The notes beneath the pieces are model-generated. The model was given only the letters and a program-made list of their open reading frames with translations, had not been told where the DNA came from and ran no database searches. A program made the position numbers and the translations under genes. This document shows positions 2,084-49,000 of a stretch of DNA of 64,000 bases, one piece after another. Source of the stretch: Podarcis muralis (taxonomy: Eukaryota); assembly GCF_964188315.1 (NCBI RefSeq), contig NC_135665.1, forward strand, positions 11,346,001-11,410,000. The letters are read 5' to 3'. How positions within the stretch are numbered: position 1 is the stretch's first letter; each line of letters starts with the position of its first letter.

Positions 2084-2614
2084 CTGACCAGCCAATGTAG
2101 GTGTTAGAATTGCCCCAATGAAACTGTATTTGCACAAATGAATTCTCTGGGAAAGTCGCAACTATTTGTTTCTATAGCACTCCTTGGGGGAAATTGATTC
2201 TGTGTACAAACACAGAGGGCTGAAAGCCTTCAGCCACCTGCTTTGCAGTCGGCATTAACAATATTTTAATTGATGCTATGCAGTCGTGAAATTTAATTTA
2301 CTATAGCCCATTGCCGAAGCACAAGAGACCCAGTATTCATGGCCTGTTTAACAGGCTGAGACAAAAGTCAGGGCTGTGGAGTTTATAAACAACACATTAC
2401 CAAACCTCATATATTCATTCTTTTCCTTTTGATGGTGGAGATAGATGAGTCTAATAGCAACACACTGTTATATATATATTGTTCAAGTCAGTCGCAAAAC
2501 AACAGATAGGAAGCAGTGTTCTTCAAAGCAGCGAAGAGACTGCTGTGCTGCCAAATGTCAAAGGGCTCTTCCATCGTAAGCTGTTTCCAGTTCTCAGCCA
2601 CCACTTCCTGCTTC

Positions 2615-2644
2615 TCATACTGCGCCTTTCCGATTGCAGCTTTC
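2615..2644 (-). CDS. SEMA4D: SEMA4D alternative terminal exon D coding part (ESCNRKGAV*)
   Basis: cattcttatttag|GAAAGCTGC...TGA; phase 0 fits exon C. Confidence 0.8.
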   Translation of the reverse strand, partial: ESCNRKGAV

Positions 2645-5600
2645 CTAAATAAGAATGAATCGGGACAGAGAAAAAGCATTTTAATTCTCCCGTGCCACTA
2701 GTCTACATCAAACTTCGCTTTCTATGAACTTAGTAGTTAAATTACGAATCTCATTTTCCACTGATAATCGAGCTATCAACTGTATAATCAAGACTTTGCA
2801 CGTTCTCCATAATTTGCACTGCACTGTAATACCTTATTCAGCCTCATCGCTGTTTTCCAGTAAATTTCAGCCCAGCAGAACTGACGAAAACTGTCAGCAG
2901 TTCTGTTAATTCTGCTCAGAAAAGAGAGGCGTGGTGGAAAGAACAACTGAAGATTGGTATCTCACTGCTGTGTGCAAAGCAATAAAGCGCAGCTTAGGAA
3001 ATCTAAAATTTATCTTAAAAGGACGTCCATGAGAAAGTACAGATCCTCAATAAACTTTTCTGGGAAAGGTCTATCTTCCATAAAGCAGGGAAATTTGGAC
3101 TGGCTGCAGGCTTCAGTGCTTACCGTCTCATAAGCCTGGGGTATGGGGCCTTCCTGTTCAAGCATGGAGCAAGGCTCTAGCTGTGTTCTGAACTATGCAA
3201 TTTGTGAGAAGTAACAGTATGCCTTGAGGGGGCTGGTGCAGATGCCAGCTTCCTTTCTTGGGACTGCCTTGGTGTGTGTGATGCTTTTGGTCAAGAACAC
3301 CAGAGGCATGTAAGATCAGGCAGGAAGACTAGTGGGGAGCATTGCTTTAGCAGCTGTATGTGTCACTCTGATGGGTCTCGCATCTCAGCATGGCTGTGTA
3401 AGCAACCCCCCCCCCCATCATCTTTGATGTGTAATGAGCATATGACTCTAGCTATCGGAATCAAATGTGGCGATAAGAGGAAAGGGGGAAGTTGGTCTGC
3501 CAGGCTGCAACAAACCACTACCAAGAGATATGCTGGGTTTGATAGTCGCTGCGATCTCCAAACCATTGTGGGGCGCATGTGCGTGCATATTAACACTTTA
3601 TAGTCAGAGTGCAAAAATGCCAAGGATTTCTTCTCTTGGCCAGGTAACAGACCTCAAATGCAAAGCACCAAATTTCTCCAAACTGAGCAGCAAAATGTGG
3701 GTACGTGTTTGCCTGTTTCATACCACCTACCCAAGTTTTTTTCCAGCTCTCCATCCTTCTGTCATGCTCGCTGACGACGCTTCTCCAGTTAGCAAATTCC
3801 TTTGACCAGGTATCCTGGTAGCTGCTGCCTGCAAACAGTAAGCAATTAAATGACAAAGCTGGCACCTGTTAAGAATTCAAGCACTGGTTTCTTTAAAAAG
3901 ATCATTTCAAAGTGCCATAACTGGGACTTCCCTCCTAAACATTTGACCTTTTCCAATACTTAGCATACCCGAGTAGCAATTGTGAAAACCAAAACTTTCG
4001 TTCAGCACGGCAACATTTCAGGGAACGCACAAACAGGCACATAGCCCACCCCTGCAAATGGCAGTCACCTCTTGTGCAGCTTGCAAAACCTAAGAAGATG
4101 AATATGAGTTTCACATATAGAATGGATTGGGTGATAGTAAGAGCACATATATGGGACGCGGGTGGCACTGGGTTAAACCACAGAGCCTAGGGCTTGCCGA
4201 TCAGAAGGTCGGCGGTTCAAATCCCCGCAACGGGGTGAGCTCCCGTTGCTCAGTCCCTGCTCCTGCCAACCTAGCAGTTTGAAAGCACATCAAAGTGTAA
4301 GTAGATAAATAGGTACCCCTTTGGTGGGAAGGTAAACGGCGTTTTCGTGCGCTGCTCTGGTTTGCCAGAAGCGGCTTAGTCATGCTGGCCACATGACCCA
4401 GAAGCTGTACGCCTGCCCCCTCGGCCAATAAAGTGAGATGAGCACCACAACCTCAGAGTTGGTCTGGTGTCCCTTTACCCTCAAGAGCGTATATGCGTGG
4501 ACCAGTGTGTTTGCTTCTATTAAACTGCCCAGCATTAGGATTCCAGCTTTTCCCACAGTTCACAACCTCTGCTGCCTTCTATTGTGACTACAACCAATGA
4601 TTTGTGACAAAATGAGTCTGTGTTTTTAAGTGCCACTAACTTGTATCTCACAAAAGGGAGTGAATCAAAATAAAGAGGGATTCTTGCGCCTCTCTGGGTT
4701 AATGCCGCCTTTGTAGGTGACACCAGATCTGAAGTTCTGCCTGCTTAAATTTCCCAAAACACGTCACTCCTCGACGTCGCACCATTACCTTCAACAGTGA
4801 TGTAGGATATGGAGGTTTTGGTTCCAGCTTTGGAGATCACACGGCAGCAGTATTCCGAATCTTGCACTATAGCATCTTTCACCCAGCTTAGAAGATGCCG
4901 TCTTCCATCAGCCAGAGCCTGGGTCTGCTGGCTCACACACGCTTCCATTTTCTGCCCATTTTTCCCCCAAACAAAATATGCATCTCTGGGCCCTGTGGAA
5001 AATTGCAGTTGGCTAATTATTATGACAGATGGCACACGAAGTCCTTTTAAAGCAGGCATTGGGAACTGCAGGTGACGAGGCCTCACCTGGACTCCTCGTT
5101 TGGTCCATGAGGCCATTTTCTCCCAGACACACCCACCTACCATTCACCTGATGTCACATGATATACTACTACTACTGTCAGGGAACTGCCATCGGAGCTA
5201 GAGGCGGAGGGAAGGCTCCAGAGGGATGCTGGAGAGGGTCCCAGTAGGGAGAGAGGCAGCCCATCTACAGGGGAAGGAAATCAGCGTAACACCAGTGGAG
5301 AAGGGGGGCAGATGGGGGAATCGGAGAGGAGGCTCCAGGACTCTTCACCAGAGACCAGCGGAGAGAGTACGGGTACTCCGCTGCCCACACCCTCCCTGCG
5401 CAGGAGACTTCTGTGCAGGGAGAGTAGGAGGAGACTTGGCGTCAAAGAACTTTTATGCTGGAAAAGGTTCAAGAAACGCCCACTGACGGATTCTGCCAGC
5501 GACTGAGACAGCCACGAAGCTTGAGGCTGTCCAGACAGAAAGGGTTCAACCAGGTAACCTAGCCAGGAGTGGCGGCAACTTACACACGAGCAACCCCTAG

Positions 5601-8600: not shown

Positions 8601-11600
8601 ACTCCCTGCCTCCCTTGGTTGAACACTACTTGAGTGTCTGTGCTGTTAAGGCACATTGGGGAAAGGTTCCTCCTCCCTAGGGGTAAACCCTAGGTGCAGG
8701 TGGTGCTGTGGTCTAAACCACTGAGCCTCTTGGGCTTGCCAATCAGAAGGTTGGCGGTTGGAATCTGCACAATGGGGTGAGCTCCTATTGTCTGTCCCAG
8801 CTTCTGCCAACCTAACAGTTCTAAAGCACACCAGTGCAAGTAGATAAATAGGTGGCAGGAAGGTAAACGGCATTTCCATGCGCTCTGGTTTCTGTCATGG
8901 TGTCCCATTGTGCCAGAAGCTACTGTTAGATCCATCTTGAGACCGCTGCCATGGATACCAGCAGCCTTCAAGCAAGCAAACTTGCCTTATTATCGCTCCC
9001 TAGCATCCCACTGCCAGAGGATTGCCTCCTTCCATTCACCACTTTGTCTCCTCCAAGCGGAAGAAACCGGGGCAGTGCTGAATATCACATCCATTGCCAG
9101 GTGTGTCCTGCTGGAAATAAAAAAGGGCTTTCCCCTTGGCCTGCCTTTATATCCACTCAGCTTCCAAGTGCTTTTGTGACATCACAAGAAACCCACAGCC
9201 AATGGCAACAGCTGGGGAGGCATCATCTTCATTGCTTTGAGCCTCACAATGGCAAGAGGACCTATCAGTGATTGTGTGCTTGTTTATTAAGGAAGTGGGT
9301 GGAGCTCTGGTCTAAAGCACTGAGCCTCTTGGGCTTCCCAATCAGAAGGTTGGCGGTTTGAATCAGTGTGACGGGGTGAGCTCGCTTTGCTCTGTCCCAG
9401 CTCCTGCCAACCTAGCAGTCTGAAAGTACGCCAGTGCAAGTAGATAAATAGATGCCGCTGTGGCAGGAAGGTAAATGGTGTTTCCGTGCACTCTGGTTTC
9501 TGTCACGGTGTCCCATTGTGCCAAAAGCAGTTTAGTCATGCTGGTCACATGACCTGGAAAGCTGTCTGCAGACAAATGCTGGCTCCCTCGGCCTGAAAGA
9601 GAGATGAGCGCCGCAACCCCATAGTCCCCTTGGACTTGAGAGCACACCTTGCTGGCATTACAGGACAGACGTTCCTTTCTCTGCAAGAGTAACAACCCTG
9701 GGAAATCAGACTTCTAAAACACATGTGGAGCCTACAAAAGTGTTCACCCTCCAACCACTGGAGGGGTCAGGTAAGAGCACTCCTCTCCTCTCTCTCTTCC
9801 ACTTGATGCTAATTGTGTGGTGAAGGCAGCACAAAAAAAACAGCCTCTCTGTGGCAGACGCTCTCTGTTGGGCCTGTGATGTTTGAAAGTATTCACCAGG
9901 TGACTCACCCACCCCTGTACACAGTTCCAGGCACATCTGGTATTGCTATGTTTCATCTTGTAACATGATGCAGGTGAGCACTTTAGGATGTTCCAGGCCA
10001 GGTCAGAATGCCAGTTCCAGGAAAAGATGTCTTTAGTGGCATCTCTGTTGTACCTATTTTCTCCCTCCACCCCACATCACCCCCTTTAAAGGAACACTAT
10101 TAAAACCAGCCCCATTGTTGCAGGGCATGGCACTTTCTCTAGCTGAAGCTCTGGCAATATGGCTGGGGGAGGAGAAAGAGACTCAGGCTAAGGAGACTTG
10201 TGTACAGTCGTTCCAGCTCTGTTCTGGAAGTCCGTTCAACTTCCAAAATGTTCGGAAACCAAAGCACGGCTTCTGATTGGCTGCAGGAAGCTCCAGAAGC
10301 CAACCGGAAGCTGCAGGGGCCCCACTGGACATTCATCTTCCAAAAATAGTTCAGAAACCGGAACAGTCACTTCTGGGTTTGCGGTTTTGGGAGCCAAAAC
10401 ATTCTGGAACTAAGCTGTTCAGAAACCAAGGTACAATTGTACTTGTGGCTGCTGCCACAAGTCCTTTGTGTGCCACAGCTCACCAACTAGACAAGAGACC
10501 TGCCAAGTAGATTCTCTCCCCCAGACCCATTTGCCACCTTCATGCGACTGCAAAACATTCCTTTGGAGGTGCTGAGGAAAGCACACTCTAGCAAGCTAAC
10601 CTACATGGTGAACCAGTGGACATTAATTTCTTGGGAGTCGCCACCAAAGCCCAGTAGCCTCCGCCACTGCACAGCACAAAGCTGTCCTTAGAAGAGAGAA
10701 CCAATTCACACAACCAAGTTCCCCCCCCAGGTGGTGAATTTCCTCCCACCTGCTGCTGCTAGGCTGACTTGGATTTTGGAAGCCTCAGAAATGTCAAGGT
10801 TCATGGAGAACTTTGAATTCCATGTGGATCCAAGTCTAGGGAGACTGAAAAATAAATTAATGAATGACTGCGTGTTGGGGTAACTGGTTAAACCTGTGTA
10901 TTGTTCCAGGAATCCAAGAAGGCTTGCGGAATACTGAATGCTTGAAGATTATCTACTTCCTGCTACTATTGGGTAATAGTCAATATCAGTTGTACCCACA
11001 GCAGACCTGTTGAAAACAATGCCCTTAATTTCAAATATTTTCAGAGGGTCTACTCTGAGTTTAACTAACGGTATTTATTATTATGATTCATATAAAAAGC
11101 TTCCTTGGGTTAGTAATAACACTGGACTCAGCAGAAGTGCAGATGAATGAGCCTTCTGCTGTAAAACTCCATGTTTCCAGAAAGTAACTCCTCTTGCCAA
11201 AACAAACCCAGCTAAGGTAATATCAAATCACCTAACGAAAGCTTTTCAAGTCAGAATAAACCAAGAGGCGGCCAACGCCATCCTTCAAATTAATTTACTG
11301 CCTGTCCTATTTCTGGAGCTAATCTTAGATGAGGTCTCCCTGAAGGTCGCTGAAAATGAGATTATCAAGGATGGAAATCAAGTAGAGAGATGTGAGTAGC
11401 GGCGAAGTACGACTGCCAGGTAAGCTGCCAGGAAGAATAAAGAGCTTAGAGAATTGCTGTTGGGCTGCGGAAATCTTCAATTGGGTACCAATTCAGTGAC
11501 ATTAGCTGTGATCACCATTCTGGTGGCACACAAAGGAACATAGGGGCCAGACCAATGGTCCACAGAGCTCAGCGTTGTCTAAAATGACCGTCAGCGGCTA

Positions 11601-17600: not shown

Positions 17601-20600
17601 AACAGAAATTGTGCTCCGGCGGCGCAGCGGCAGCAGGAGGCCCCATTAGCTAAAGTGGTGCTTCAGGTTAAGAACAGTTTCAGGTTACGAACGGACCTCC
17701 GGAATGAATTAAGTATTTAACCCGTGGTACCGCTGTACTGAAATTGGCCCATTGACGTCAAATATCAGATGTGCTTTTGTACTATGTTTAGTTTGGTACA
17801 ACTTTGGTACCGATCGAAAGGTCGGCGGTTCGAATCCCCGCGGCGGGGTGCGCTCCCGTTGCTCGGTCCCAGCGCCTGCCAACCTAGCAGTTCGAAAGCA
17901 CCCCCGGGTGCAAGTAGATAAATAGGGACCGCTTACTAGCGGGAAGGTAAACGGCGTTCCGTGTGCTGCGCTGGCTCGCCAGATGCAGCTTGTCACGCTA
18001 GCCACGTGACCCGGAAGTGTCTGCGGACAGCGCTGGCCCCCGGCCTCTTGAGTGAGATGGGCGCACAACCCTAGAGTCTGTCAAGACTGGCCCGTACGGG
18101 CAGGGGTACCTTTACCTTTACCTTTACCGCTGTACTGTATCTACAAACTGAATCACAAGAAGGAGAATAGCATAGATAAGATGTTTCTTGCCGTGCAGAT
18201 GCAGAAAAGAGTGTGATCCACACAATATTCAACATTCCCATTGCCCAAGATAAGACTCACACAACCTACTTCCTTTGGTGTGATAGAATCTACAGGTGTT
18301 TAAAAAAAATATTTTTAGTAGAGTGTATTATTTTAACTTCCCTTGTGCAACGTCTCAACCCTTGCACAGTCATGAGTTTGCTAGACCCTTAAAAATGTAG
18401 TATAAACACCAACAATTAGGAAACACTTGCCTGCGAGCGCTCCAGTTGGAGAACAGCCTTTTCCAAAAGTGCCATGGGCTTTGAAAACACTCAAACTCAG
18501 GATGCAAGGGAGAAACGTGCTAAGAGGAAGGCACGCTTGGCAAATCCACACCGTGATCAACTCCCGCCCGGAAACCAGTGTCCCCACTGTGGAAGGACGT
18601 GTGGATCCAGAATTGGCCTCCACAGTCACTTACAGACTCATTGTTAAAACCGTGTTTATGGAAGGCAATCTTACTCAGCTACGAGTGATCGCCAAAGAAG
18701 AGGAGACCCTGGAAAATCCAGGAAAAGGTGAACCAGGCCGTGGAGAGTCCTGACTTGGGGAAACATCTAACGATTCTAACCATTCTGCAATACCAGTTCC
18801 ACACACACCATTACACATAGAAAGCATCAAGCAGAACTTCAACAATAGTGTCCATATGCTTATATTGTAGCAGGAAGTGGTAATATGATTGAATCACCAT
18901 GAGCAAGCAAACAACTGCAAATAGAACCTGGGAGGAGACAAGAAGCAGCATTACGTTTGTAATCTGATCAGCTGGATAACCAGCAGGACTAAGTCATGGC
19001 GGCACCTGATGATCTATAATAAATCACATTAAGCAGCCCAAGGGCAGTTCTTACCAATGTACTTATGGTGCTAAGCCCTTTGGCCTAATTAGAAGACACA
19101 CAACAGCTACAGGGATGCAACATTTTATTTATTTCATCAGCTTGGTATATTAAGAGCAAGCCGAGTTATGGGATAAATCTTCAACACAGATTCCAAGGTC
19201 ACAAGCAAGATGAATATAGAAATGGCAGAAAATTTCATTTAATGAGATTGGAGTTTGAAGGGACAAGAGGTCATGTTGTTCAGCAATGGAATTGTACATT
19301 CTATTCATTTAAAGAATTTGGTTTTATAGCTTTGTTTGGATTGCCATGTTCCAAAATTCTGATTTGTATTCCAAGCAAACAAAGGAAAATCACCTAAACC
19401 AGTGTTTCCCAAACTTGGATCTCCAGCTGTTTTCAGACTACAATTCTCATCATTCCTGATCACAGGTCTTGCTAGCTAGGGATGACGGGAGTTGGTGGTG
19501 AAAGAATGGTGAGATGGTTTACTTGGAAATTGCATACCTATCCTGAAAAGTGTAGATCTGAAGAACTGTTAAATAAAGAGCTGGATTATTTAAAGAACCA
19601 AAACTAAAGATCATATCCCACCAACCCATGATTTTTTTAAACACAGATCGGGAGACATACATCAACACAGCATTGATTCCTAGATGGAAAACCAGTGCTT
19701 TAGCCTTAATATGGTTAACTCCAGCAGACAATATTTGACATAAGCCAGTTTATTAAAATTGTGAGTACAGTGGACCCTCCAGATATGAACTTAATTCGTT
19801 CCAGGGGTCAGTTCGCACCCCGAAAATTATGTAAATAGAGGCGTGCTTCTGCACATACACACACGGCAAAACCTGGACGTAAACACTTCCGGGTTTGCCA
19901 TGGCCGTAACCCGAAGATTCTGTATCCAGAGGGATACGTAAGTAGAGGTCAGACTGTACTTGTAAATACAAAATTCCTGAAAAAGACGCTCTCAAATATA
20001 CAGCACAAATAAACCAAAGTTTGGCAATATTTTTTGATCTGGAAAATGTTTCTGAAATGTCATTAAAGTTGCGGTAATGCTCCTATTTCCTGTAGCCACG
20101 TACGAAGGAAAAGACATTGGGGACTGATTCTAATGACTGACGTAAGAGAAGTTGTTACAAGGGCTGATTTTAAACCTTGTGTGCACAACCTGCGTAAAGG
20201 ATGCGTAAGGCCCTTCCAAGCCGACAACACTGATTTCTGCTGCCTGGGGAGACCCTACGCCCTCATTTTTTGCCACCAAACAATGCTGCCTGTGATGGGA
20301 GGAAGGACCGCAGTTTCCCACCCTCAACACAAACCTTTTTGACGCCCTGACCTCTCTTGCCATTTGACTCCCTGGGCTCGTGCACAAAAGAAGTTAAAGC
20401 AAATGCGATTTGGTGAATGCAACCTGCAGGAATGGGTAACAGCATCCTCCGACTTACCCGTAGCTTGGCAGAAGAGGAAGAAGGTGGTCTGGGCACCCAC
20501 GTGCCGGATCTGGTCACTTAGGAACGGTGGCATCAAGGTGACTGTGGCCAAATCTGCGCTAGACCAAACATCGGGCTGGGGACTGATGGATGGAGGACGT

Positions 20601-23600
20601 GAGTCACTTTCCATACAGGACAAAGAGGAGGAACCAGTAGGAGGGAAAGTTATGGGAGATGAAGCTGTGGCAGAGGAGGACAGAAAAGGAAAAAGAAGAA
20701 GAAAAGGGCACTAAGGAAAAAAGTTCTAAGAACATGCCAAAGAAATAGTTTGCAAAGGAGGGGGGAAATGAGCAGTGAACATTTAATCAAAAGAAAGTTC
20801 CTTCTTATTTCTGTTTTGAAATACAGGAAATCACACCTGTTCAAATCTTACAGCGAGAAAACCCTCTAAAGCTTCTGGGTTTTTTTTAAGACAAGTTATT
20901 ATTGCTCAAGGACAAGGATGAAATACAATGAACTTCAATATTTATTTCCTTATTTTTTTCATATATACAGAATCAAAAATAGAAAAATAAAAGCAAAAAT
21001 GAACCATACAAAATCTAGAACAGTTTACACTAAGACCATCTAAGGTGTGTGCTGGGGAAATATTTCAACAGGAACAAAGAAAAGGACTTTGGGACATGTT
21101 GCCTACTCAGTCGTCTCTATTTCTAACCATATTTACATGAGACACAAAAGACAGCGAGAGACAAGGATTTTTAAAAACTGTACAGCACAAAGGAGTTTTA
21201 CAGACAAATAGTGCCGTTGTTGAGTCCCAGGAGAGATAAAGTGGTCGACCCTTTGGGCAGTTTTCTGCTCTTCTCTGGTTTCTTTTCTCCAGTTGCCTTT
21301 TTGGAAAACATTGGTGGAAGTTGTGAAGAAACAGTGAAAATATTTGGCAAAGTTGATTATGGGGGTGAGAGAGGCTGGAGCCCTATTGCTTCCCAAACTG
21401 TGGGGGAAAGTTACAAAATGCATGACATCCTCAACAGTCTCTTTTGAGAGGTCCATTGCATGTTTGCCAAGGTCCGCATTGTATCTCTGAAACAGAAGCC
21501 TCTCACACTGCTGCGGTTCAGTGACTACTGTTTGTCCACAATAATCCACTTTTTAAAACCTTAAAACAATTCCATAAAATCAGTTAATGTGGCAGTGTCC
21601 AACTACATCTTTTTAACATCTTTTTTCTAAAGCTAAACTCCCCACAACCCAAAAATGAACATTAAGCTCTCAAAATGATTACCATATCAACGCCTCTTAA
21701 AAAAAAAGGGGGGGGGGGAGAGAGACAATTAACCGAAGCTTATCCCTGAGAACCTTATGCAACTCTAGAATACATCATATTCTAAAAAGGTACACAAACA
21801 GTTTTGGAAAGATCCAACATTTCTTTCACCAGCTAAAACTACCAGACAAATGCATTAAAATCACTAGATGCAAAGAAATGTCCCAATCTGGACAAAAAGG
21901 CTATTATTTACCAATCTGATAAACTAAACATCATTTCCAATTTGGAATTAAACTGAAATTAGATTTTTAATGGCAGTTAAATACGTGCAGGCAGGAGCTA
22001 CTGAAATCCTTTTTGGTATGACTCTGCAACAAGAGTTAATTTTACCTTCTATGAAAAAGAGGGATTAATCAAAATAGTCAGTATGCGCAAGTGTTAAATT
22101 ATCCTTGGCTGGGGAGCAGGGGGAGGGCAGCTTAGAAGCTCACCGTGTGAAACCGTAACTGGCCATTTAAAATAAAGAAGAAACACATAAGAAATAAGTG
22201 TGTAACAGAACCGTTTTCAGAAAATGCGAGATCTCTCTCTGCTCTATCCAGGTGTGAAATGACACTTTTTTTAAGTGTCACTTAAAAAAAGCTGAGAACA
22301 CGTAGCCCTTTCTGGCCCAGTTATCACATCTAAAATGTTTTATGTTCGAAAACAAATGGTTCAGAATGACAGTACTTTCATTAGGGGAGGTGGGGTTTTT
22401 CTCCTTTAATCCCCCTCAGCATCCGAGTCAGCAAATTTCAGTTCGCACTTGACATCAAAAGGTTTGTCCTTGACTTCCTTGTAAGACTGCGAATGGTCCT
22501 CATCGTGTTGAACATGGCCGTTTCCATAGTCTGCTTCAGTCTCGTATCCCGTGTCATGTGCCGGTTTTGGGTGCTCCCCGCTTTGGGTCAGGAGACTGCC
22601 TGGCTCCACCAGGGTCTCCTTCACGCTTTGCTCACAGTCAGAGAAATCGGCCTTGGGCTTCTTCTTCCCAAGCAACATAGCAGAACGAAACTTCAGGCAC
22701 TGGTCCGGCAGAAACCCTTTGTAACAGTTGTAGGCAAACAGGCACAGGAAGAGCACGAAAAAGAAGAGGAAGAGGAACATCAAGAGGGAGTTATCGTTGG
22801 ACCTCAGAAACATGGTCTTTGCAGAGACCTCGGGGGGCGAGTTCAAGAGCTCGACGTCAGGTGCGGTGCTCATGAGGGTGGGGACAATGGGATTCGTCAC
22901 TATCCTGGACGTTGTGACTGGTACCACCGGGGAGGTGGACATGTGAGCGGCCGAGTCTTGGATTGCGACAGTTGGCATTTTGGCTGCTTCCGCGTTGCGT
23001 TCTGTCGGTGTGGTTGGCTGGGTGGGGCTCAGCGTGGTGTGCTGGACTTTCCTCAGTTCCAAAACATGCTTCGCCAACACTTGCGAGAACTTCTGGTTCT
23101 TCACTTTTTCTTCCGACAGGCACTGATAGACGCCGCTGTCGCCCTCGGACAAATTGAAGATCAGCAGCGCCTTCTCCAGCAGCCGGTACTTCGGACTTTC
23201 CACCTTGAGCACATCGTCCTTGAATTTCCAAACCACCTGGGCCAGGTTGGACTTCTGAGAGCATTTTAGCTCTGCAGTGCTGCCATGCTTGAAAGTGTGC
23301 TGCAGATAATGCTCTCTTACTTTATCTGGAACAGCAAAATAAATGTAAACGAGAACAGAAATGAGTTTTCTTTTCGGTGTGGGGAGCAGGCCAATTCAGC
23401 CATGCAGGCATATACTGGGGAAAAACTACCAGCTCACAACACGTGTCACGCTAGCCTGAAACAACAACACAGGGTACAGCTTACAATGGATATGTATTTG
23501 TCTAGGATAAAGTGGTGGCATTCCTAAGTATCTCTGGAACTGCTTGCTAAACTGCTGCATTCCAAAGATGGAGAAATCTGTGCGATTAGCGTATGATTTG

Positions 23601-26600
23601 TGTACGGGGATGAGGGGAGTAACACATGAATGCTGCTCTAAGCCTTAAGTGTTAAATGATGATGTTCAGTCATCACAGGAACAAAGACTGCGTACATAGG
23701 CTCATCCCAAGAAAATGAGCACACATGAAATTGCCAGGGGGAAAAACCCAAACCCAGAAAGTGCAAAACCTCAAAAAATGAATGATCCGAAGAGTCATAA
23801 ACATTGCTGAAATATTTAAGTGCAACTACCTTTTATCTGAAATACTGCTTTGCGCTTAAATTCTTTTGCAAGAAAACACAACCGCCTGGTTCACACAACA
23901 CAGTAAGCCAAACTATGGCTTTCTGAGACCATAGTATCTTCCGAGTCTGGCAGGGTTCCATGTGTGCAATAGAGATTGCCAAACAGAGCTTTCAGTAACT
24001 CACACATGGTGGACAAAGCCAGAAAGTATTTGACCATAAGAAGCTGTGAGTCTATGAAGCTTTGGATCATGTGCCCAATACAAAGAAAATACTTGTGAGT
24101 TCTACTATACCAGGCCTTTTTGGTGGTGGCTCCCCACATATGGAATGTTCTCCCCAGGGAAGCATGCCTAGCACTATCACTGGCTACTTTTAGGCACCAG
24201 GCAAAAAACCTTTACAGGCTTTTGGTCTTTAGATAGTGTGGGTCTCTTTTAGTAGACGTCAATGCCTTTTTATGTATATCACTCCTTTTAGCTTTTTTTT
24301 TGGTTTAACTCTGTACTGGTTTCAATTTTCGTATTCTAGGTTGCTTTTCAGCTTTCTCTTTGGTTAAAAAAACTGACTAACAGCCCAATAAATAAATAAA
24401 TAAAACAGAATCTCTATTCAACGTATTCACACCATATTTTTTTCATTAATATGGAAGCAATAGCAACAGCAACTCTTTGCAGAAAATGTGCTGTTATGGC
24501 AAGAAATACCGCGTTGTTGCAGCCAAACTGCTGACTGAGGTTGGTTACAGGGAACACAGTTACTCCCTCGTTTAAAACAACTTCACCGGATACTGGTCCA
24601 TTTCCAGGCACAATTCAAATTGCTGGTTATGTGTGAACCTGCCTGGGTGCTAAGACCCTTGGGTGAGTGCCTTCTCTTGCTCCCATCAACATCACACCTA
24701 GTGGTAACACAAGAGATAGCCTTTTCTGTGTCTCAAGAGAAGCTGGACTGTCTCTTTTCTGCCAGTTTTCTTTCTCTCCTATTCAGACAGGCCTTTGGAA
24801 AGCAAAGAGCAAGTGATACTGATCAGCGGCGTGCTGTCAGCACAAACTGTTTTAACTGCTGATTCTAACTGTGCCCTGATGTGCTTAAATTAATGTTTCT
24901 ATTCTATAATGTTTTTAAATGTAAGCCACCTTGAATCCCAACTTGGGAGAAAGGTGGGATATCAATATGTTGATGGTGATGATACTCAATGGCTTGAGGC
25001 ATCATCTCTGGGCATGCAAAACTTGTCCTTTTGGAAGGCACACCCAAAAGTATTTTCAGCCAGAAACATTACATTAGACATTAATATGGTGGTACCTTGG
25101 TTTTCGAACATAATCCGTTCCAGAAGACCATTCGAGTTCTGAAACGTTCAAAAACCGAAAACTCAATACAGAAAATTCAATACGGAAGCAGTGTGGCATG
25201 TTTGACTTCCGAGGCATGTTCGAAAACTGAAGCATTTACTTCCGGGTTTACGGCGTTCGAAAATCGAAATGTCCGTCAACCGAGACGTTCGAAAACCAAG
25301 GTACTACTGTATTGATTTCATAAACCCCATGACAATTCAAGGGTATAAAAGGCAATTTCCTCAAGTAATTACAATAACAGCTCACAGAGGGGTCACCAAG
25401 ATGTGCCCTCAGAGGCCTTCTCTGAGTTCTGGCCCCCTGCCCCTCCGTCCCTCTCCTGAGAGAAGCCTCCTTCAGCCAACAGAAGACTTTTTTGAAGCCT
25501 AATTGTGGCATGGAGGAAAGGTTACATCTGGGGAACAGTTGTGGCACATGTGAGGGGGCCACAGACTGCGAATTGGCCCTATTTTTGGGGTGGAGGGGGG
25601 AAAGTAAAGTAAAAACAAGCCAAAAATAAAAAGGTGTGGGTTTTTTTATTGTAACAAAAAGCTACACATTAAATAAAAGTGTTAAGATATCGCACCAAGC
25701 AATTCTGTGGAGGAGCTCAGCCCAAATGTTTATTATACTTTATTATTTCCCCACCTCCTTTGGAAAGAAAGAAACGCTTACCAGCAGTACAAGAAGAAGC
25801 ATCGCCACTAATATTCTGAATCCAGTCCCTACAAAAGTAAAGAGACAGTCAGAGAGTCAATACATTTACCATCGTCTACCCACCCTACCCTCTGGGTGCA
25901 AATCTCTTCCCACCTGCAAATCTGTTATCTGCCTCCCTCCAAATGCCTGGAAAGGCGGCACGGGCAGGATTTGATAATATCCAAACAAGTGACGCAGGAG
26001 AGAGGGAGAGGAAGGAGCGCAGAAGCCGTCGGATCACCTTTTTGCTGAAGGGCAGCATTCCACAAAGTGACAAACAGACCCTTTATTTAAACAAACAAGT
26101 TGTGTGTGTTTGCAACAGTTTGGAACACAGTTTGGGAAAGCCGCTGCTCAGGAACCCTTTTGGAAAAACACTTCTCAGACATGGCAGTGATTTTGAGTCT
26201 GCTGACTCCAAATCTGTGCCGAAGCCAGGTAGCTTTCTTTACACACCTTTAAATGGGCAAAATCATGTAAAATATCTGCAATCTTCTAATACCTTTCTCC
26301 TATAGTGTGTGTGCTTGGGATATCTGGTATTAATTGTGCCCATGGAGGCGAAAGAAAGATCTAGAAAAAGAACAGCCCACAATTTTTTTCAGGCTAACAG
26401 CTGCTGTGCATTTGGCAGTGAAATGTTTCATAGGGGAAGTTAGAACCACACGTGTTATGTCTTGACATCCCGATATCACGTGTGTGAGTATCGTGCTTCC
26501 CTTTACGAAGCCACACAGAAGCTTTCTAGACTTTGGGAAGGAGGCGCCAGACTTTAATACTTCAATACTCCAAATTTACCAGGGACATTCAGGGAACTAG

Positions 26601-37038: not shown

Positions 37039-40000
37039 GGCAGGCAGCATGCTCAGTAAATGTTTCTGGAAATTTTGCAAATGTTTTTAAAAATTTAACC
37101 TTGTTTCACATCAAGAGGTTTCCCCCGAAGCCAGGCAGCTACTATTATGTTTAAAAGGCATGAGAACGACAGAATTAGGGCTGGTTGCAATCGTTTTCTT
37201 CCAGGCTGTGGCAGCTAGCCACCTGTCACATCACAGTCAAGCAAGAAATTTTCTTGGTGTGAGAAAAATGTTGGCTTTGTCTGGTACCCTTTAGAAATGC
37301 GTCTGGCATAGCTCAGGCATCCAGCTTCCCTTGAAATTACGATGGCTAGAATTCAATCGACAGCTTATGAGTGATGCGTGAAGCGAACTAAGCGGGAGAG
37401 TATAAAGAGTTCTTAGTCTCTCTTTTTTTAAAACTAAGAAAATTAATTTCCACCATCATCTAATAATGGGAGCAACTCGGTTTCCCTTACTGACACAGAA
37501 TGAACCATTTTTTGAATGCAGAATGCAATCTTGAATCCTTTTTCTTCTTCTGAAGTCTCGCTAAAGCTATGTCCACATGGAAGCATCCAACATTCGGGGA
37601 TTGGAGCTACGGTGCTCTGTTGGAAGCACTGTCTAAATCTTGAGGAAGGGAAAGACTCTCCTCCACAGAAAAAGCTCTGGACGCACAAAGGAAACACAGA
37701 ACCATGCAGACTGCACTGTTCATGCTAGTTGAGGGATATACGCAGTGAACCCAAACCACCAGGGCAAGGGGCGGGGAAGCAATATAAACAACATGACAAC
37801 ATCTTGGGATTGAAAGGGCCACAACTTTGTTCATTGCTTTGGCATAGGCACTGGGGATGTGTCCTGAATCAGCCAACCCAATTGCTGGCAAATTACTTTA
37901 TCAGGGTTGATTCGGGTTAAGGATCCCTCCCATGACACACATTAAATGTGGTTGATCTCTCCAGGATGCCATTTGAAGAGTTCTATGGCCCATTTGCCCC
38001 TGTCAGGGCATTCGAACAGAGTCCTTCTCCCTAGAGGCCTTTACCTAAACTTCTTGATAAGGAAGGGAGTTAGTCTCCTTGCCACCTGTTCTGCTTAGAC
38101 CAAGGATCCATGCCAATGACTTTATCTGCCAGTAATCTGTGACAATTGCTGTGAAATAGGTAACACCTTCAAATGTGGTCCACTTTGTCCCGAGGCAAAT
38201 TCCTTCCTGGCGCCAAATATCATCAACAGAGTAAAAAAGGTAAAGGCAGTGCTTTTTTCTAGGGGGACGCTTACCCCTAAACATTTTGTGAATCAAAGTT
38301 TGACCTCATTGAGGGGCAGTATTTGAATATGAGTAGGAAAATGAGAGTACCCATTAACATTTTTTTAGAAAAAAAGCACTGGGTAAAAGGTAAAGGACCC
38401 CTGGATGGGAAAGTCCAGTCAAAGGTGACTATGGGGTTGCAGCACTCATCACGCTTTTCAGGCCGAGGGAGCCAACATTTGTTCACAGACAGCTTTCTGG
38501 GTCATGTGGCTAGCAGGACTAAACTGCTTCTGGCACAACGGGACACTGTGACAGAAGCCAGAGCGCATGGAAAAGCCGTTTACCTTCCCACCGGAGCAGT
38601 GCCTATTTATCTACTTGCACTGGTGTGCTTTCAAACTGCTAGGTTGGCAGGAGCTGGGACAGAGCAACAGGAGCTCACTCCAAGGTGGGGATTCAAACTG
38701 CCAACCTTCCAATTGGCAAGTCCAAGAGGCTCATTGGTTTAGACCACAGCACCACCCTTGTCCCAGATAAACATGCACACAGTCACCATTGTGAGGCTCA
38801 AAGCAATGAAGCTGATGCCTCCCCAGCTGTTGCCATTGGCTGTGGGTTTTTTGTGATGTCACAAAAGCACTTGGCAACTGAGTGGATATAAAGGCAGGCC
38901 AAGGGCAAAGCCCTTTTCTGTTTCCAGCAGGACACACCTGGCCATGGATGTGACATTCAGCATTGCCCAGGTTTCTTCCACTTGGAGGAGGCAAAGTGGT
39001 GAATGGAAGGAGGCAATCCTCTGGCAGTGGGATGCTAGGGAGCGATAATAAGGCAAGTTTGCTTGCTTGAAGGCTGCTGGTATCCGTGGTTGGAAGCTGG
39101 CGGATGTCTCATGATGGACCTAACAGTAGCTTCTGGCACAACAGAGCACCATGACGGAAACCAGAGTGCACAGAAACACCATTTACCTTCCCGCCACAGT
39201 GGTACCTATTTATCTACTTGCACTGGCGTGCTTTAGTACTGTTAAGTTTGGCAGAAGCTGGAACAGAGCAATAGGAGCTCACCCTGTTGTGCAGATTCCA
39301 ACCGCCAACCTTCTGATCGGCAAGCCCAAGAGGCTCAGTGGTTTAGACCACAGCGCCACCCGCGTCCCCTGAGTGACAGAGTAACTCCATAGCAAGGCCA
39401 TGCACTGCCCGCTTACCTTTGGGCAGGGCCATAACATGTAAGGTGAGCAAGTGGGATGTCCACTGCCAATTGTGCTGCTGGAAGCAGCCTATTAAAATAC
39501 ACAGGACAGACCTGAGTGATAGCTGTGGTTCAGCCAGGTACGCCTCAAAAGTACCGCCCCTTAACTTGGCTGCGACTGGCCAGTTCAAATTTAATTGGTA
39601 GAGGATCCCACTGCCAGAGCAGCAAGTCATCTCTCTGTAAGCCTGGACATCTTGAAATATAAACTGCACATCTGGTCTACAGTGATTGGGGGGGGGGGAC
39701 TGCTAGCACACAAAACAGTGAGAGTGCTGTTTCCTCTCACCCCAAAATTATAAGGAAACAATGGGGAAATGGTTGAGCTCATTCTCACCTTACAAACTCT
39801 GGCTATCCTTGGAATCATCAGCTTGCCAAGAAATTCATATTCCACAGAAACCTCAGTGAAAAAGAAATACACTTTGTCGTCATCCTCGTCGGCACTGTTT
39901 GGGTCAGCTCTTATCACATCGGCAAAAATGAAATTTGGTTCTAGAGAAGTGAAATACAAAATTGCTTAATTTTAATAATTTTCCCCACCTCTCAATATTT

Positions 40001-46000: not shown

Positions 46001-49000
46001 CAATCCTCCCCCCCAAAAAAGCTCGACAACTCTGGTCTATGCTCCCAAGAAAGCTCGACAACTCTTGGCAATGACAACGGGTAGATCACTGCTAATTTTA
46101 TTTTACTGGGAGTAGATCGCAGTCTCTAGAGAGTTGGACGTGCCTGATCTAAAGCAACAGCAACAAGGAGAAAAGCTAAATAAGCTCATCCATCAATGAA
46201 CTGCTTCTTCAAATATGTTGCAGCAGAAAGCCAAGGCTGCTTGCAGTTATGGGAGAGGTTGGCTCTTTTTCATACTTGGTACTGCTGCATTTGAAGAAGG
46301 AGGGAAGAAGGCAGCACTACCGTGCGGCAAACTATCAGCTCTACGTTTTTTATCATACATGCACACACAACCGTTCAGCATCATGACTTACAGGAACTAA
46401 CACAGCAAAAGAGACACATTAACTCTGCTGAAGGTTTAATTAAAGGGGCATGGAAAATTAATTACTTCTGCAATACTACTAGGAGAAAAAAAAACTTTCT
46501 TGAAAGTCAAGCTGATAAAGAGACAAGCCACAAACTCTTTTCACCTGTTTGGATTTGCCCTTTTCTGCACATTTCGTCTTCTTGTCTTCTGTGACCTTCC
46601 AAAACACCTGGAGGAAAACAGAACCAGGGTAAGAACAAATCAAAGGACCTTTTCAGTGCTCCCACAAAGAGCAATTAATATTACGGCGTCCCAAGCCATC
46701 CTGGGGCAAATGCAAGCAGCTATACACCTCTTTTTTAAAAAAAATAATAATAATTCTGCTCTCTTGGAAATGGGACTTTTCCAAACACACCTGCAGTACT
46801 GGAGTTGGAGAACCTTAAGCACATATGTAAGATTACAGTAAATAACTTCAAATTATTCATTGTGCTTCCCATGAATTGGATTTGCGTAGGAACTGTTCAC
46901 AATCTATAGTGGTGCCTTGGTTCTCAAACATGTTGGTTCTCAAACACCTTTGTTTCCAAATGCCAAAAACCTAGAAGTAAGTGTTCTGGTTTTCGAACGT
47001 TTTTCGGAAGCCGAACGTCCAATGAGGCTGTCGGCTATTGTTTCCGGGGCCCCTACACCAATCAGAAGCCATGCCTTGGTTTTCAAACATTTCAAAACTC
47101 AAACAGACTTCTGGAACGGATTAAGTTTGGCGCTTTTGTTTTTGCTATTTATTTTGTGTTTTTGTTTTTGAGGCTTTTTCGGTTAATTTGTTTTTGTGAC
47201 TGTGTGGAACCCAGTTCAGCTACTGATTGATTGTGCGCGTGCGGAAATGGATAAAAGCCCCTCATCCAAACAATGACTATCATCAGTGCAGGTATGAAAA
47301 ATATTTAATTTTAATTTTTATAATCCACAATACTGTCTTATTTATTTTACAGTATAGTACATTGATTATTGGGGACGCGGGTGGCGCTGTGGGTTAAACC
47401 ACAGAGCCTAGGACTTGCCGATCAGAAGGTCGGCGGTTTGAATCCCCATGACGGGGTGAGCTCCCATTGCTCGGTCCTTGCTCCTGCCAACGTAGCAGTT
47501 CGAAAGCACGGCAAAGTGCAAGTAGATAAATAGGTACCGCTCTGACAGGAAGGTAAACAGCATTTCCGTGCACTGCTCTGGTTCGCCAGAAGCGGCTTAG
47601 TCATGCTGGCCACATGACCCGGAAGCTGTACACCGGCTCCCTCAGCCAATAAAGCGAGATGAGCACCGCAACCCCAGAGTCAGCCACGACTGGACCTAAT
47701 GGTCAGGGGTCCCTTTACCTTTACTTTACATTGCGTATTGCTTTCATTTTATAGATTAATGGTCTTGTTAGATACTAAAATTCTTGTTAAATTGCTGTTT
47801 TAGGGGTTGTTTTTAAAAGTCTGGAATGGATTAATTCGTTTTGCATTACTTTCTATGGAAAAGCGCACATTTGGAACAACAGACTTCCAGAACGGATTAA
47901 GTTTGAGAACCAAGGTACCACTGTATTGGGCAAATGACAACCACTCCCCTTCCATCCAGCCATTTCCCAAACTGAGAAAACAATATAAGCAACAGGAAAG
48001 CAATAATATAAAACGAACTTGCATATTAAAGACTACGCAGCTAGAAAATGGCTGACAGGTTTCACCTGGTAAAAGCAGCTCTCTAGCTTTAAGCATGAAT
48101 GTAGCAAGGGGATTACATTTTGAAGCCCTACAACAATGCATATTCAGATGCACTCCTATAGTTAAGAGAGGAATGAATCCTATTACTTTGAGCATGCATG
48201 TTTAAATTAATTAAATATTAATTAATTAATAATTGTATTATTTATACCCCACCCACCTGGCTGGGTTTCCCCAGCCACTCTCAGCACCTTCCAGCACAGC
48301 TAAAAACACAGTATGTTTGGGCTTGGGCTGCTGATCATGAATATTTAGTATACAAAACTGCATACTTACCTCTTGCTTTTTTTCAGTAATGTTCAATGCA
48401 TTTAGCGCAAAGATCACTTCTCTAGCTCCTACGTACAAAACATCCTTATCTTCACTTAGCAACAAAGTTGAGTAGTTAAATATTTCGGGCTCTTGAAAAT
48501 ATACTAGATGAACTTCTGTTAAAATACAATTAAGGCAAACATTAATTCAAAATGCATTCATTTCAAGGCAAACTTTATTTACAATTGACTAAATAGTTGC
48601 TTGATTTCAAATCCTGGCCTAGATCCATTGATTTTGAGATCGTTAACTAAAGTGGCACAACCTAATGACTGGACATTAGTGAAATTGAAGGGAGAGAAAG
48701 CAATCCAAAAGCTTAAGCAAATGCAAATTCGCTGCCCTGGAGGCCAGGATTGTAGAAAGGGTCATTGGAATATTTGAAATGGGGTTCTTCCTGAGTGCGA
48801 AACAATGAAAAAATTGAGGGGGCCCTACAGTCAAATGATATGCAGAAGCCACAGAATGATAATGGCTTTTATTAGGACCAACCTAAATGCCAAAAATCTA
48901 TGTGAGCTTTCCGTATCTGTTCATCAGGCTGGAAGATGATCAAAACTTGGGAGGAAGATGGAAGAAACAATGACCGTGTTGTCACCCAAATTCCACAATC

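Follow-up and report, generated by a model that had tools for sequence, protein, structure and literature searches.

Downstream of its canonical last exon, SEMA4D of Podarcis muralis has four further exons, which give rise to a splice form that lacks a membrane anchor, and this form ends in a conserved tail of 42 residues that is predicted to be helical and carries all of its Trp, Phe, Met and Cys residues on a single heptad seam. The window, that is, the whole stretch of 64,000 nucleotides that was analysed, contains the 3' part of this gene. In our best reading, which we give about an even chance of being correct, the tail is an assembly device, a Trp-rich coiled coil locked by disulfides. 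The initial annotation had seen in it a tryptophan amphiphilic tetramerisation (WAT) peptide of the kind found in cholinesterases. The part of that proposal that stands is a real, spliced, helical, heptad-patterned and Cys-bearing tail on an isoform without a transmembrane segment; membership in the AChE_tetra/WAT family is not supported.

Exons and architecture of the tailed isoform

The exons that matter for the argument lie on the minus strand and are as follows:

30282-51422, minus strand: upstream SEMA4D exons encoding signal peptide, Sema domain and PSI, placed by collinear tblastn HSPs of two full-length SEMA4D isoforms
25782-25828, minus strand: 47-nt exon after the PSI exon, with a phase-1 donor
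22406-23325, minus strand: canonical last exon encoding the canonical Ig, stalk, transmembrane segment and cytoplasmic tail (276-aa ORF; acceptor ttccag/AT at 23325)
20458-20664, minus strand: exon B, encoding the conserved Pro/Ser linker and then the first half of the isoform-specific Ig, placed by sequence, splice sites and tblastn
4789-4992, minus strand: alternative-Ig exon, encoding the second half of the isoform-specific Ig and ending in ISYITVE (phase 1 in, phase 1 out)
3731-3828, minus strand: exon C, encoding the Trp-rich heptad helix (98 nt; phase 1 in, phase 0 out)
2615-2644, minus strand: coding part of exon D, ESCNRKGAV and the stop codon (2615-2617), with acceptor ...ttatttag/ at 2644

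The tailed isoform skips the canonical last exon, which is matched by tblastn with residues 550-669 of P0114. The donor of the 47-nt exon can join either that exon (G+AT, Asp) or exon B (G+CT, Ala), and in two orthologues, P0146 and P0097, the architecture switches at exactly this point. Phases are compatible along the tailed path, from 25782 (G/) to 20664 (CT...), from 20458 (G/) to 4992 (GG...) and from 4789 (G/) to 3828 (GC...), and the tblastn HSPs are collinear and on the same strand from 51422 to 3731. The alternative-Ig exon, whose orthologues are found by phmmer at 5.8e-21 and below, ends in phase 1 (GAA G/gtaatg), and its final G together with the GC of exon C gives the leading Gly of the tail. 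Exon C, which is matched by tblastn of the Xenopus and ground-squirrel isoforms, has an acceptor at 3828 (...tgtttgcag/) and a donor at 3731 (/gtaggt) and consists of this GC and 32 codons; exon D supplies E34, S35 and C36, and its 3' UTR runs on below 2615.

Splicing from the alternative-Ig exon to exon C and on to exon D is proved by RNA. The joints 4789 to 3828 and 3731 to 2644 are both present in contigs of two RNA runs, as CT..AC on the plus strand and hence GT..AG on the minus strand, and the joint between C and D is also found in four raw reads of a third run. RNA depth in the introns is far below that in the exons, and cover is continuous from exon D down to 2300. Translation, splice sites and RNA joints thus bear out the initial annotation in that exons C and D encode the 42-residue tail. 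Further upstream, phase compatibility and the orthologues suggest that exon B is joined to the upstream SEMA4D exons in this lizard as well. A long form with two Ig domains (~840 aa), as in Sceloporus and mammals, is not predicted here, since the window has no GT donor at the matching place (...ACA GAA C/GC AAC).

SEMA4D models without a transmembrane segment are widely annotated in RefSeq, from frogs to mammals and in one sturgeon. Full-length models of the same architecture come from frogs, turtles, crocodilians, lizards, birds, mammals and a sturgeon (for example Sceloporus X4, 732 aa; Alligator X2; Rhea X3; Xenopus X2, 729 aa; many frogs; Acipenser X4; primate entries of 738 aa), and the curated mouse records 'isoform 3/4 precursor' share it. 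The order is Sema, PSI, Pro/Ser linker, a second Ig of C1-like fold and the tail, and the linker contains a short proline motif, SP[IK]PFPP, that is kept from sturgeon to mammals. With a signal peptide and neither a transmembrane nor a GPI signal, the isoform is probably secreted. The domains that match its Ig best in structure are of the C1 set, among them those of beta-2-microglobulin and MHC class II; a Foldseek search with the model of Ig plus tail gave alignments that cover the Ig part only. C1-set domains usually work in pairs. The soluble form of SEMA4D has been described as a product of proteolytic shedding in PMC10935759, where no other soluble form is discussed, and in the literature searched we found no study of a spliced soluble isoform. 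Nor did any paper there contain both 'semaphorin' and 'tryptophan amphiphilic', which agrees with the initial annotation, to which no description of such an isoform was known.

The predicted tail helix and its heptad seam

In the AF2 model of an orthologous Ig plus tail monomer, the Ig is a beta-sandwich (pLDDT about 90) and the tail is predicted as a single uninterrupted helix (residues 142-181, pLDDT 85-93 over most of its length) that begins one residue after the last Ig strand, the G strand. A helix is predicted again in the full-length AF2 model of the Sceloporus isoform (691-722, pLDDT 44-63), which is too poor (mean pLDDT 57.5) to place the tail and docks it with confidence on neither the Sema domain nor the linker.

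The regularity of the helix is such that all seven of its Trp, Phe, Met and Cys residues (W8, F12, W15, M26, W29, W33 and C36) fall on one a/d heptad seam, a pattern that random placement reaches in 0.017% of trials with the best of seven registers (p ~2e-4). The strict 4-3 heptad that the initial annotation had read in the tail, with its near-terminal Cys, is confirmed. V19 and H22 complete the seam, which spans residues 8-36, at least four heptads; at the g positions, three residues out of four are apolar or small as well. The hydrophobic moment of the tail peaks at 103-105 degrees per residue, the period of a coiled coil, and is significant against shuffles. Trp at the core is unusual for two-stranded coiled coils, a point that speaks against a coiled coil.

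The comparison of orthologues that the initial annotation had proposed, carried out with 61 distinct tails, found the Trp and Met residues of the seam and Cys36 to be invariant or nearly so. H22, W29, W33, E34 and C36 are invariant, W8, W15 and M26 nearly invariant, and the ESC motif as a whole is invariant or nearly so. The full seam across orthologues is W8, F/L12, W15, V/A/I19, H22, M26, W29, W33 and then Cys36, with Leu at position 12 in mammals and frogs. Mean entropy is 0.35 bits on the seam and 1.29 at the other positions (Mann-Whitney p=0.0016). Cys36 stands on the heptad seam, at -7 from the C-terminus in this lizard and at -6 in mammals.

Competing readings of the tail

As a self-association module of the coiled-coil type, the tail would be one amphipathic alpha-helix placed directly after the last Ig strand. 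Through their tail helices, two or more secreted SEMA4D chains would associate in parallel orientation, and disulfides between the Cys36 residues of different chains would lock the assembly. The product would be a soluble Plexin-B/CD72 ligand that is stabilised by covalent bonds and may be of higher order. That the tails self-associate, that the disulfide links different chains and how many chains take part is what we infer from the pattern described above; the C1-set-like Ig domain has been counted as support.

The tail could in principle work as the cholinesterase peptide does, making SEMA4D tetrameric or anchored on polyproline with Cys36 in pairwise disulfides. Four helices lined with Trp and His would then close around a polyproline-II helix that could come from a partner protein or from the SP[IK]PFPP linker of the isoform itself. 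The PRAD of ColQ is LLTPPPPPLFPPPFF. We regard this reading as unlikely, and it is equally unlikely that the tail is the first device of the WAT/PRAD type known from proteins other than cholinesterases, be it by convergence or by divergence beyond detection. Searches for a family relationship, a check that the initial annotation had itself proposed, came back empty: Pfam hmmscan at E<=10 returned no family at all for the lizard tail, scans of this tail and 13 orthologous ones gave only chance matches (E about 0.06-0.1), and AChE_tetra (PF08674) had no match at E<=10 in any of the 14 (lizard, snake, birds, frog, mammals), whereas human AChE and BChE WATs, used as a positive control, reach 77.3 and 79.1 bits where the cut-off is 25. 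Among PDB sequences at E<=10, phmmer with the tail found no cholinesterase (IL-12 p40 appeared as noise at E about 0.7) and hmmsearch with the tail profile found no chain, while a WAT probe recovers the 1VZJ, AChE and BChE chains from the same set at 1e-25 to 1e-10. An ESM Atlas feature search returned Ig-related clusters with scores up to 0.64 and no cholinesterase, and a structure search there gave no match. Homology of the tail to the WAT peptide is therefore not supported by sequence comparison.

The resemblance at the level of pattern is nevertheless real. The WAT sequences given in the initial annotation match 1VZJ letter for letter; its gapped alignment, with one heptad inserted, is not the best one, since both hhalign and Smith-Waterman favour a register that has no gap and is displaced by one heptad, in which W15/V19/H22/M26/W29/W33 face WAT W10/F14/W17/M21/W24/F28. 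Every seam position then matches in kind, and the e positions agree too (R/K16, D/S23 and K/R30 with K11, S18 and K25). Alignment of the two profiles by hhalign gives a probability of only 7.9% with a pairwise P of 0.0044, and Smith-Waterman scores against shuffles reach p=0.0002 for the Xenopus tail, 0.02-0.04 for the lizard and about 0.1 for the human tail, which is no better than shuffles; the resemblance was noticed post hoc, so that these pairwise P-values overstate the likeness. In WAT peptides, Trp residues recur at equal spacing (i, i+7, i+14) and belong to a set of seven conserved aromatics, and the T peptide is C-terminal, alternatively spliced and amphipathic, with a Cys at -4 near the C-terminus (PMC1285061). 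The SEMA4D tail shares the alternatively spliced C-terminal amphipathic helix, by RNA joints, AF2 and hydrophobic moment, and the near-terminal Cys; apolar g positions and bulky Trp residues likewise favour more than two strands, and the conserved proline motif in the linker of the same isoform would fit. The WWW motif, however, is broken: one column reads W8, W15, H22 and W29 and the other F/L12, V/A/I19, M26 and W33, so that the central Trp17 of WAT aligns with the invariant His22, and the seam holds at most five aromatics (four in mammals and frogs) against the seven of WAT. The tail is moreover split over two exons, and its Cys is in register with the seam, unlike Cys37 of WAT.

Somewhat more probable, though still doubtful in our view, is that the helix does not form homo-oligomers and either folds back on its own Ig, with Cys36 paired to C637 in tetrapods, or offers a docking surface for another partner, which might be a receptor, the matrix or a membrane interface; in either version a free Cys might serve thiol-mediated quality control in the ER. 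The extra Ig Cys (C637 of P0146) is nearly invariant in tetrapods, which leaves an even number of spare cysteines in frogs, and its possible pairing with Cys36 within one chain speaks against an interchain lock there. The high pLDDT of the helix in the Ig plus tail monomer could reflect packing, and the invariant E/D21-H22 pair in an apolar seam hints at a specific contact or at a pH or metal switch. Amphipathic helices rich in Trp and Lys/Arg often sit at membrane interfaces. A fold-back turn is, however, not predicted, a single residue separating the last strand from a straight helix of 40 residues, and the full-length model, poor as it is, does not dock the tail. The sturgeon protein keeps the full seam and Cys36 and has neither the extra Ig cysteine nor the linker cysteine, so the tail Cys cannot depend on an intrachain partner in that species. 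We consider it highly improbable that exons C and D belong to unproductive or independent downstream transcripts and that the peptide has no function of its own. One RNA contig does run from exon C through the alternative-Ig exon into the upstream intron beyond 5200, and short models start in that intron (human hCG1985052, macaque LOC697570 and a Peromyscus 'isoform X4' of 183 aa), but the tail is conserved as protein from sturgeon to human with its invariant residues on a helical seam, the exon phases fit the SEMA4D frame, and both Ig halves are conserved, the first of them lacking a start codon of its own.

SEMA4D (CD100) serves as a signal in the immune system, in bone and among neurons, and from sturgeon to human the gene has continued to encode a soluble version with its own Ig and a Cys-bearing helix with a Trp heptad. 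If the tail controls valency, be it as a dimer, a tetramer or a proline-rich tether, it would set the strength and location of soluble SEMA4D signalling and would provide an epitope or an assembly state that is absent from shed SEMA4D. A tail that worked like WAT would convert the guidance cue from a dimer into a ligand that is tetrameric or anchored.

Likenesses to known assembly peptides

The WAT peptide (PF08674; 1VZJ; BChE tetramer 6I2T) resembles the SEMA4D tail in its approximately 40 C-terminal, alternatively spliced, amphipathic-helical residues, with Trp every seven residues on one face, Met or an aromatic at the neighbouring seam position, basic flanks and a near-terminal Cys, and in its place at the end of a secreted, already dimeric ectodomain. 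The SEMA4D seam is one heptad longer, has fewer aromatics and is encoded by two exons, its Cys follows W33 by 3 residues whereas that of WAT follows F28 by 9, and it has no known polyproline partner and no detectable sequence or profile relationship to WAT. According to a 2018 BChE cryo-EM preprint, the WAT/polyproline mode of tetramerisation has been seen only in cholinesterases.

Short parallel coiled coils of the leucine-zipper type share with the tail four heptads, an apolar a/d seam, a core Cys able to bond between helices and one buried polar residue, here His22, which is comparable to Asn16 of GCN4. They differ in that the SEMA4D d positions are Trp instead of Leu and the g positions are partly apolar, which argues for a wider interface or for more than two strands. 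Coiled coils designed with an all-Trp core assemble as pentamers.

The secretory tailpieces of IgM and IgA heavy chains offer a parallel in gene organisation. There, too, alternative 3' exons switch between membrane and secreted forms, and behind a C1-type Ig comes a short C-terminal peptide, in which a Cys close to the end drives covalent polymerisation. SEMA4D has the same kind of switch and the same succession of C1-type Ig and Cys-bearing C-terminal peptide, although the immunoglobulin tailpiece is made of 18 residues in beta-strands and the SEMA4D tail of a helix of 30-40 residues. Shed sSEMA4D, finally, is like the spliced isoform a soluble SEMA4D ectodomain that acts on Plexin-B/CD72 (PMC10935759), but it arises by cleavage of the membrane-bound protein and retains canonical Ig and stalk, whereas the spliced isoform owes its solubility to splicing and has another Ig domain together with the Trp-rich tail.

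Exon layout and transcripts of the tail-bearing isoform

Searches by tblastn with two full-length SEMA4D proteins, Xenopus isoform X2 (P0097) and ground-squirrel X4 (P0114), place the gene on the minus strand of the window, with collinear exon matches running from 51422 down to 3731. Four more coding exons lie downstream of the canonical last exon, and exon phases are compatible across the whole module.

Coding features at the 3' end of SEMA4D
25782-25828, minus strand: 47-nt exon with a phase 1 end; can join the canonical last exon or exon B
22406-23325, minus strand: canonical last exon; canonical Ig, stalk, transmembrane segment and cytoplasmic tail
20458-20664, minus strand: exon B; Pro/Ser linker and first half of a second Ig domain
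4789-4992, minus strand: alt-Ig exon; second half of this isoform-specific Ig domain
3731-3828, minus strand: exon C; first coding part of the tail
2615-2644, minus strand: exon D, coding part; end of the tail

The 47-nt exon is also the exact switch point in annotated orthologues, and translation of exons C and D returns the same 42 residues that the initial annotation had given for the tail. The annotated orthologues show a short form of about 730 aa (PSI, linker, isoform-specific Ig and tail) and a long form of about 840 aa in which the canonical Ig remains, together with some of the stalk. The long form uses an internal donor (in Sceloporus and mammals, after ...PTT.TE) for which there is no GT at the matching site in the window (22990-23017, ACA GAA C/GC AAC), so that only the short architecture is predicted in this lizard.

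RNA covering 2300-5200 contains the joints 4789->3828 and 3731->2644, with GT..AG on the minus strand. Two RNA runs from separate studies yielded contigs with both joints, a third run has the joint between exons C and D in four raw reads, and the exons are covered much more deeply than the introns. That exon B is joined to the Sema exons in Podarcis muralis is predicted from phase and orthology. A 539-nt contig (depth 44) spans the joint of exon C with the alt-Ig exon and beyond it continues unspliced into the upstream intron (4788-5200 and beyond), and matching short database models from human, macaque and deer mouse start in that same intron. Such a contig may result from an internal promoter or from intron retention, and its product may be the tail preceded by half of the Ig domain, lacking a signal peptide.

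At 3756, all covering RNA reads (7/7, two runs) carry A on the plus strand and not the reference C, which makes tail residue 25, a g position of the heptad, Met instead of Arg. As 60/61 other tails have Met, Ile, Leu or Val here, it is the reference allele that departs from the norm. A tRNA-derived SINE (4143-4433) lies within the intron that separates the alt-Ig exon from exon C, with SINE-like copies near 150-260, 9363-9695, 17709-18068, 38323-38742 and 47422-47649 and related ORF fragments repeated through the window; its summed contig word depths of about 1e5, with many variant letters, fit a high-copy transcribed repeat.

Conservation of the heptad seam

With the alt-Ig exon as query, phmmer against 1.84 billion representatives and subsequent region-restricted searches recovered the module in snakes, lizards (Sceloporus X4, 732 aa), turtles, crocodilians, birds, more than 20 frogs, one sturgeon and many mammals (mouse 'isoform 3/4 precursor', primate 738-aa entries, human hCG1985052). 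All seven W/F/M/C residues of the tail (positions 8, 12, 15, 26, 29, 33 and 36) fall on one a/d seam, a placement reached in 0.017% of random-placement trials, and V19 and H22 occupy the other seam positions. The hydrophobic moment of the lizard, human, frog and sturgeon tails is maximal at 103-105 degrees per residue, the 3.5-residue period of coiled coils. Among 61 distinct tails, H22, W29, W33, E34 and C36 are invariant and W8, E11, W15, E21, M26, K31 and S35 nearly so, with a mean entropy of 0.35 bits at the seam versus 1.29 elsewhere (p=0.0016).

Predicted structure of the Ig domain, linker and helix

AF2, run on a 33-sequence alignment with Peromyscus P0029 as first row, predicted a confident Ig sandwich and a single helix (142-181) that begins one residue after it, with pLDDT 85-93 over most of its length. 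For the entire Sceloporus isoform the model was of low quality (mean pLDDT 57.5), with a helix once more at 691-722 and neither tail nor linker confidently docked. According to Foldseek (orthologue model m3a2aae95f92c), the closest folds to the isoform-specific Ig are those of C1-set domains (for example beta-2-microglobulin and MHC class II beta-2), and the tail helix aligned to nothing. As BLASTP detects no resemblance between it and the canonical Ig of SEMA4D (E 0.57), the isoform-specific Ig is not a recent duplicate. Beyond the two canonical cysteines it carries a third, nearly invariant one (KMEAC in the window; C637 of P0146), found in tetrapods but not in sturgeon, and in the lizard domain the F-strand Cys is part of a CC pair.

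The linker starts, in exon B, with the motif ASSP[IL/K]PFPP..S(S/F)LS(C/S), a short proline-rich stretch kept from sturgeon to mammals (P0097, P0141, P0114, P0154) and followed by a Cys in amniotes only. It could be a docking site, and it is tempting to see in it a miniature of the polyproline partner (PRAD) of cholinesterases, serving the Trp helix, but AF2, from the 33-sequence alignment, shows the linker disordered.

Possible modes of assembly and the cholinesterase peptide

The initial annotation had likened the tail to the tryptophan amphiphilic tetramerisation (WAT) peptide of cholinesterases, whose sequences it gave correctly, as judged by the WAT chain in the PDB. WAT is a conserved T peptide in which seven residues are aromatic, among them Trp at equal spacing (WWW motif), and a Cys lies at -4; it assembles 4:1 around an antiparallel polyproline-II helix (PMC1285061; bioRxiv 10.1101/431288). 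Profile comparison, however, did not bear out the proposed kinship: none of 14 tails matched Pfam AChE_tetra at E<=10 (true WATs score 77-79 bits), a tail profile retrieved no chain at E<=10 from a PDB library in which WAT chains are present, and hhalign gave a probability of 7.9%. The best alignment is ungapped, placing W15/V19/H22/M26/W29/W33 on WAT W10/F14/W17/M21/W24/F28 with similar basic and Ser positions flanking the seam, but the match clearly exceeds composition-preserving shuffles in Xenopus alone (p=0.0002); in lizard and bird the excess is marginal (0.02-0.07), and in human there is none (about 0.1). Unlike WAT, the tail has an invariant His in place of the central Trp, fewer aromatics, a Cys in heptad register, one extra N-terminal heptad and a coding sequence split over two exons. 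Taken with the negative searches, these differences mean that family membership is not demonstrable for the tail.

We favour the idea that the tail serves self-association: it would form a parallel coiled coil, held together by Cys36, and so stabilise the semaphorin dimer or multiply it in an isoform that owes its secretion to splicing, not to shedding. This is suggested by the coiled-coil period, the seam-restricted conservation and the position of the Cys on the seam, by the exit of the helix from the Ig domain without a turn, and by the sturgeon protein, which retains Cys36 without any other spare cysteine; the bulk of the Trp side chains and the g positions, apolar in part, point to more than a simple two-stranded zipper. 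Alternatively, the helix could pack on its own Ig domain or bind another partner or a membrane, a possibility to which the extra, nearly invariant Ig cysteine of tetrapods lends some weight and which we consider less likely. A WAT-like tetramer centred on polyproline is distinctly less probable, given the negative family tests, and a non-functional transcript of exons C and D, contradicted by conservation from sturgeon to human, is hardly credible.

The isoform bearing the tail is already annotated in many genomes. In the literature searched we found no publication on its tail or on spliced soluble SEMA4D, nor any that pairs semaphorin with tryptophan amphiphilic; soluble SEMA4D has been described as a shedding product (PMC10935759). 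Self-association through the tail would be a variant on a known theme, the C-terminal oligomerisation helix with a cysteine. Should the tetramer nonetheless be real, for which the chance is small but real, it would be the first WAT-type device outside cholinesterases. The SEMA4D tail and WAT have a design principle in common, in which an alternatively spliced C-terminus carries a Trp-bearing heptad helix and a terminal Cys.
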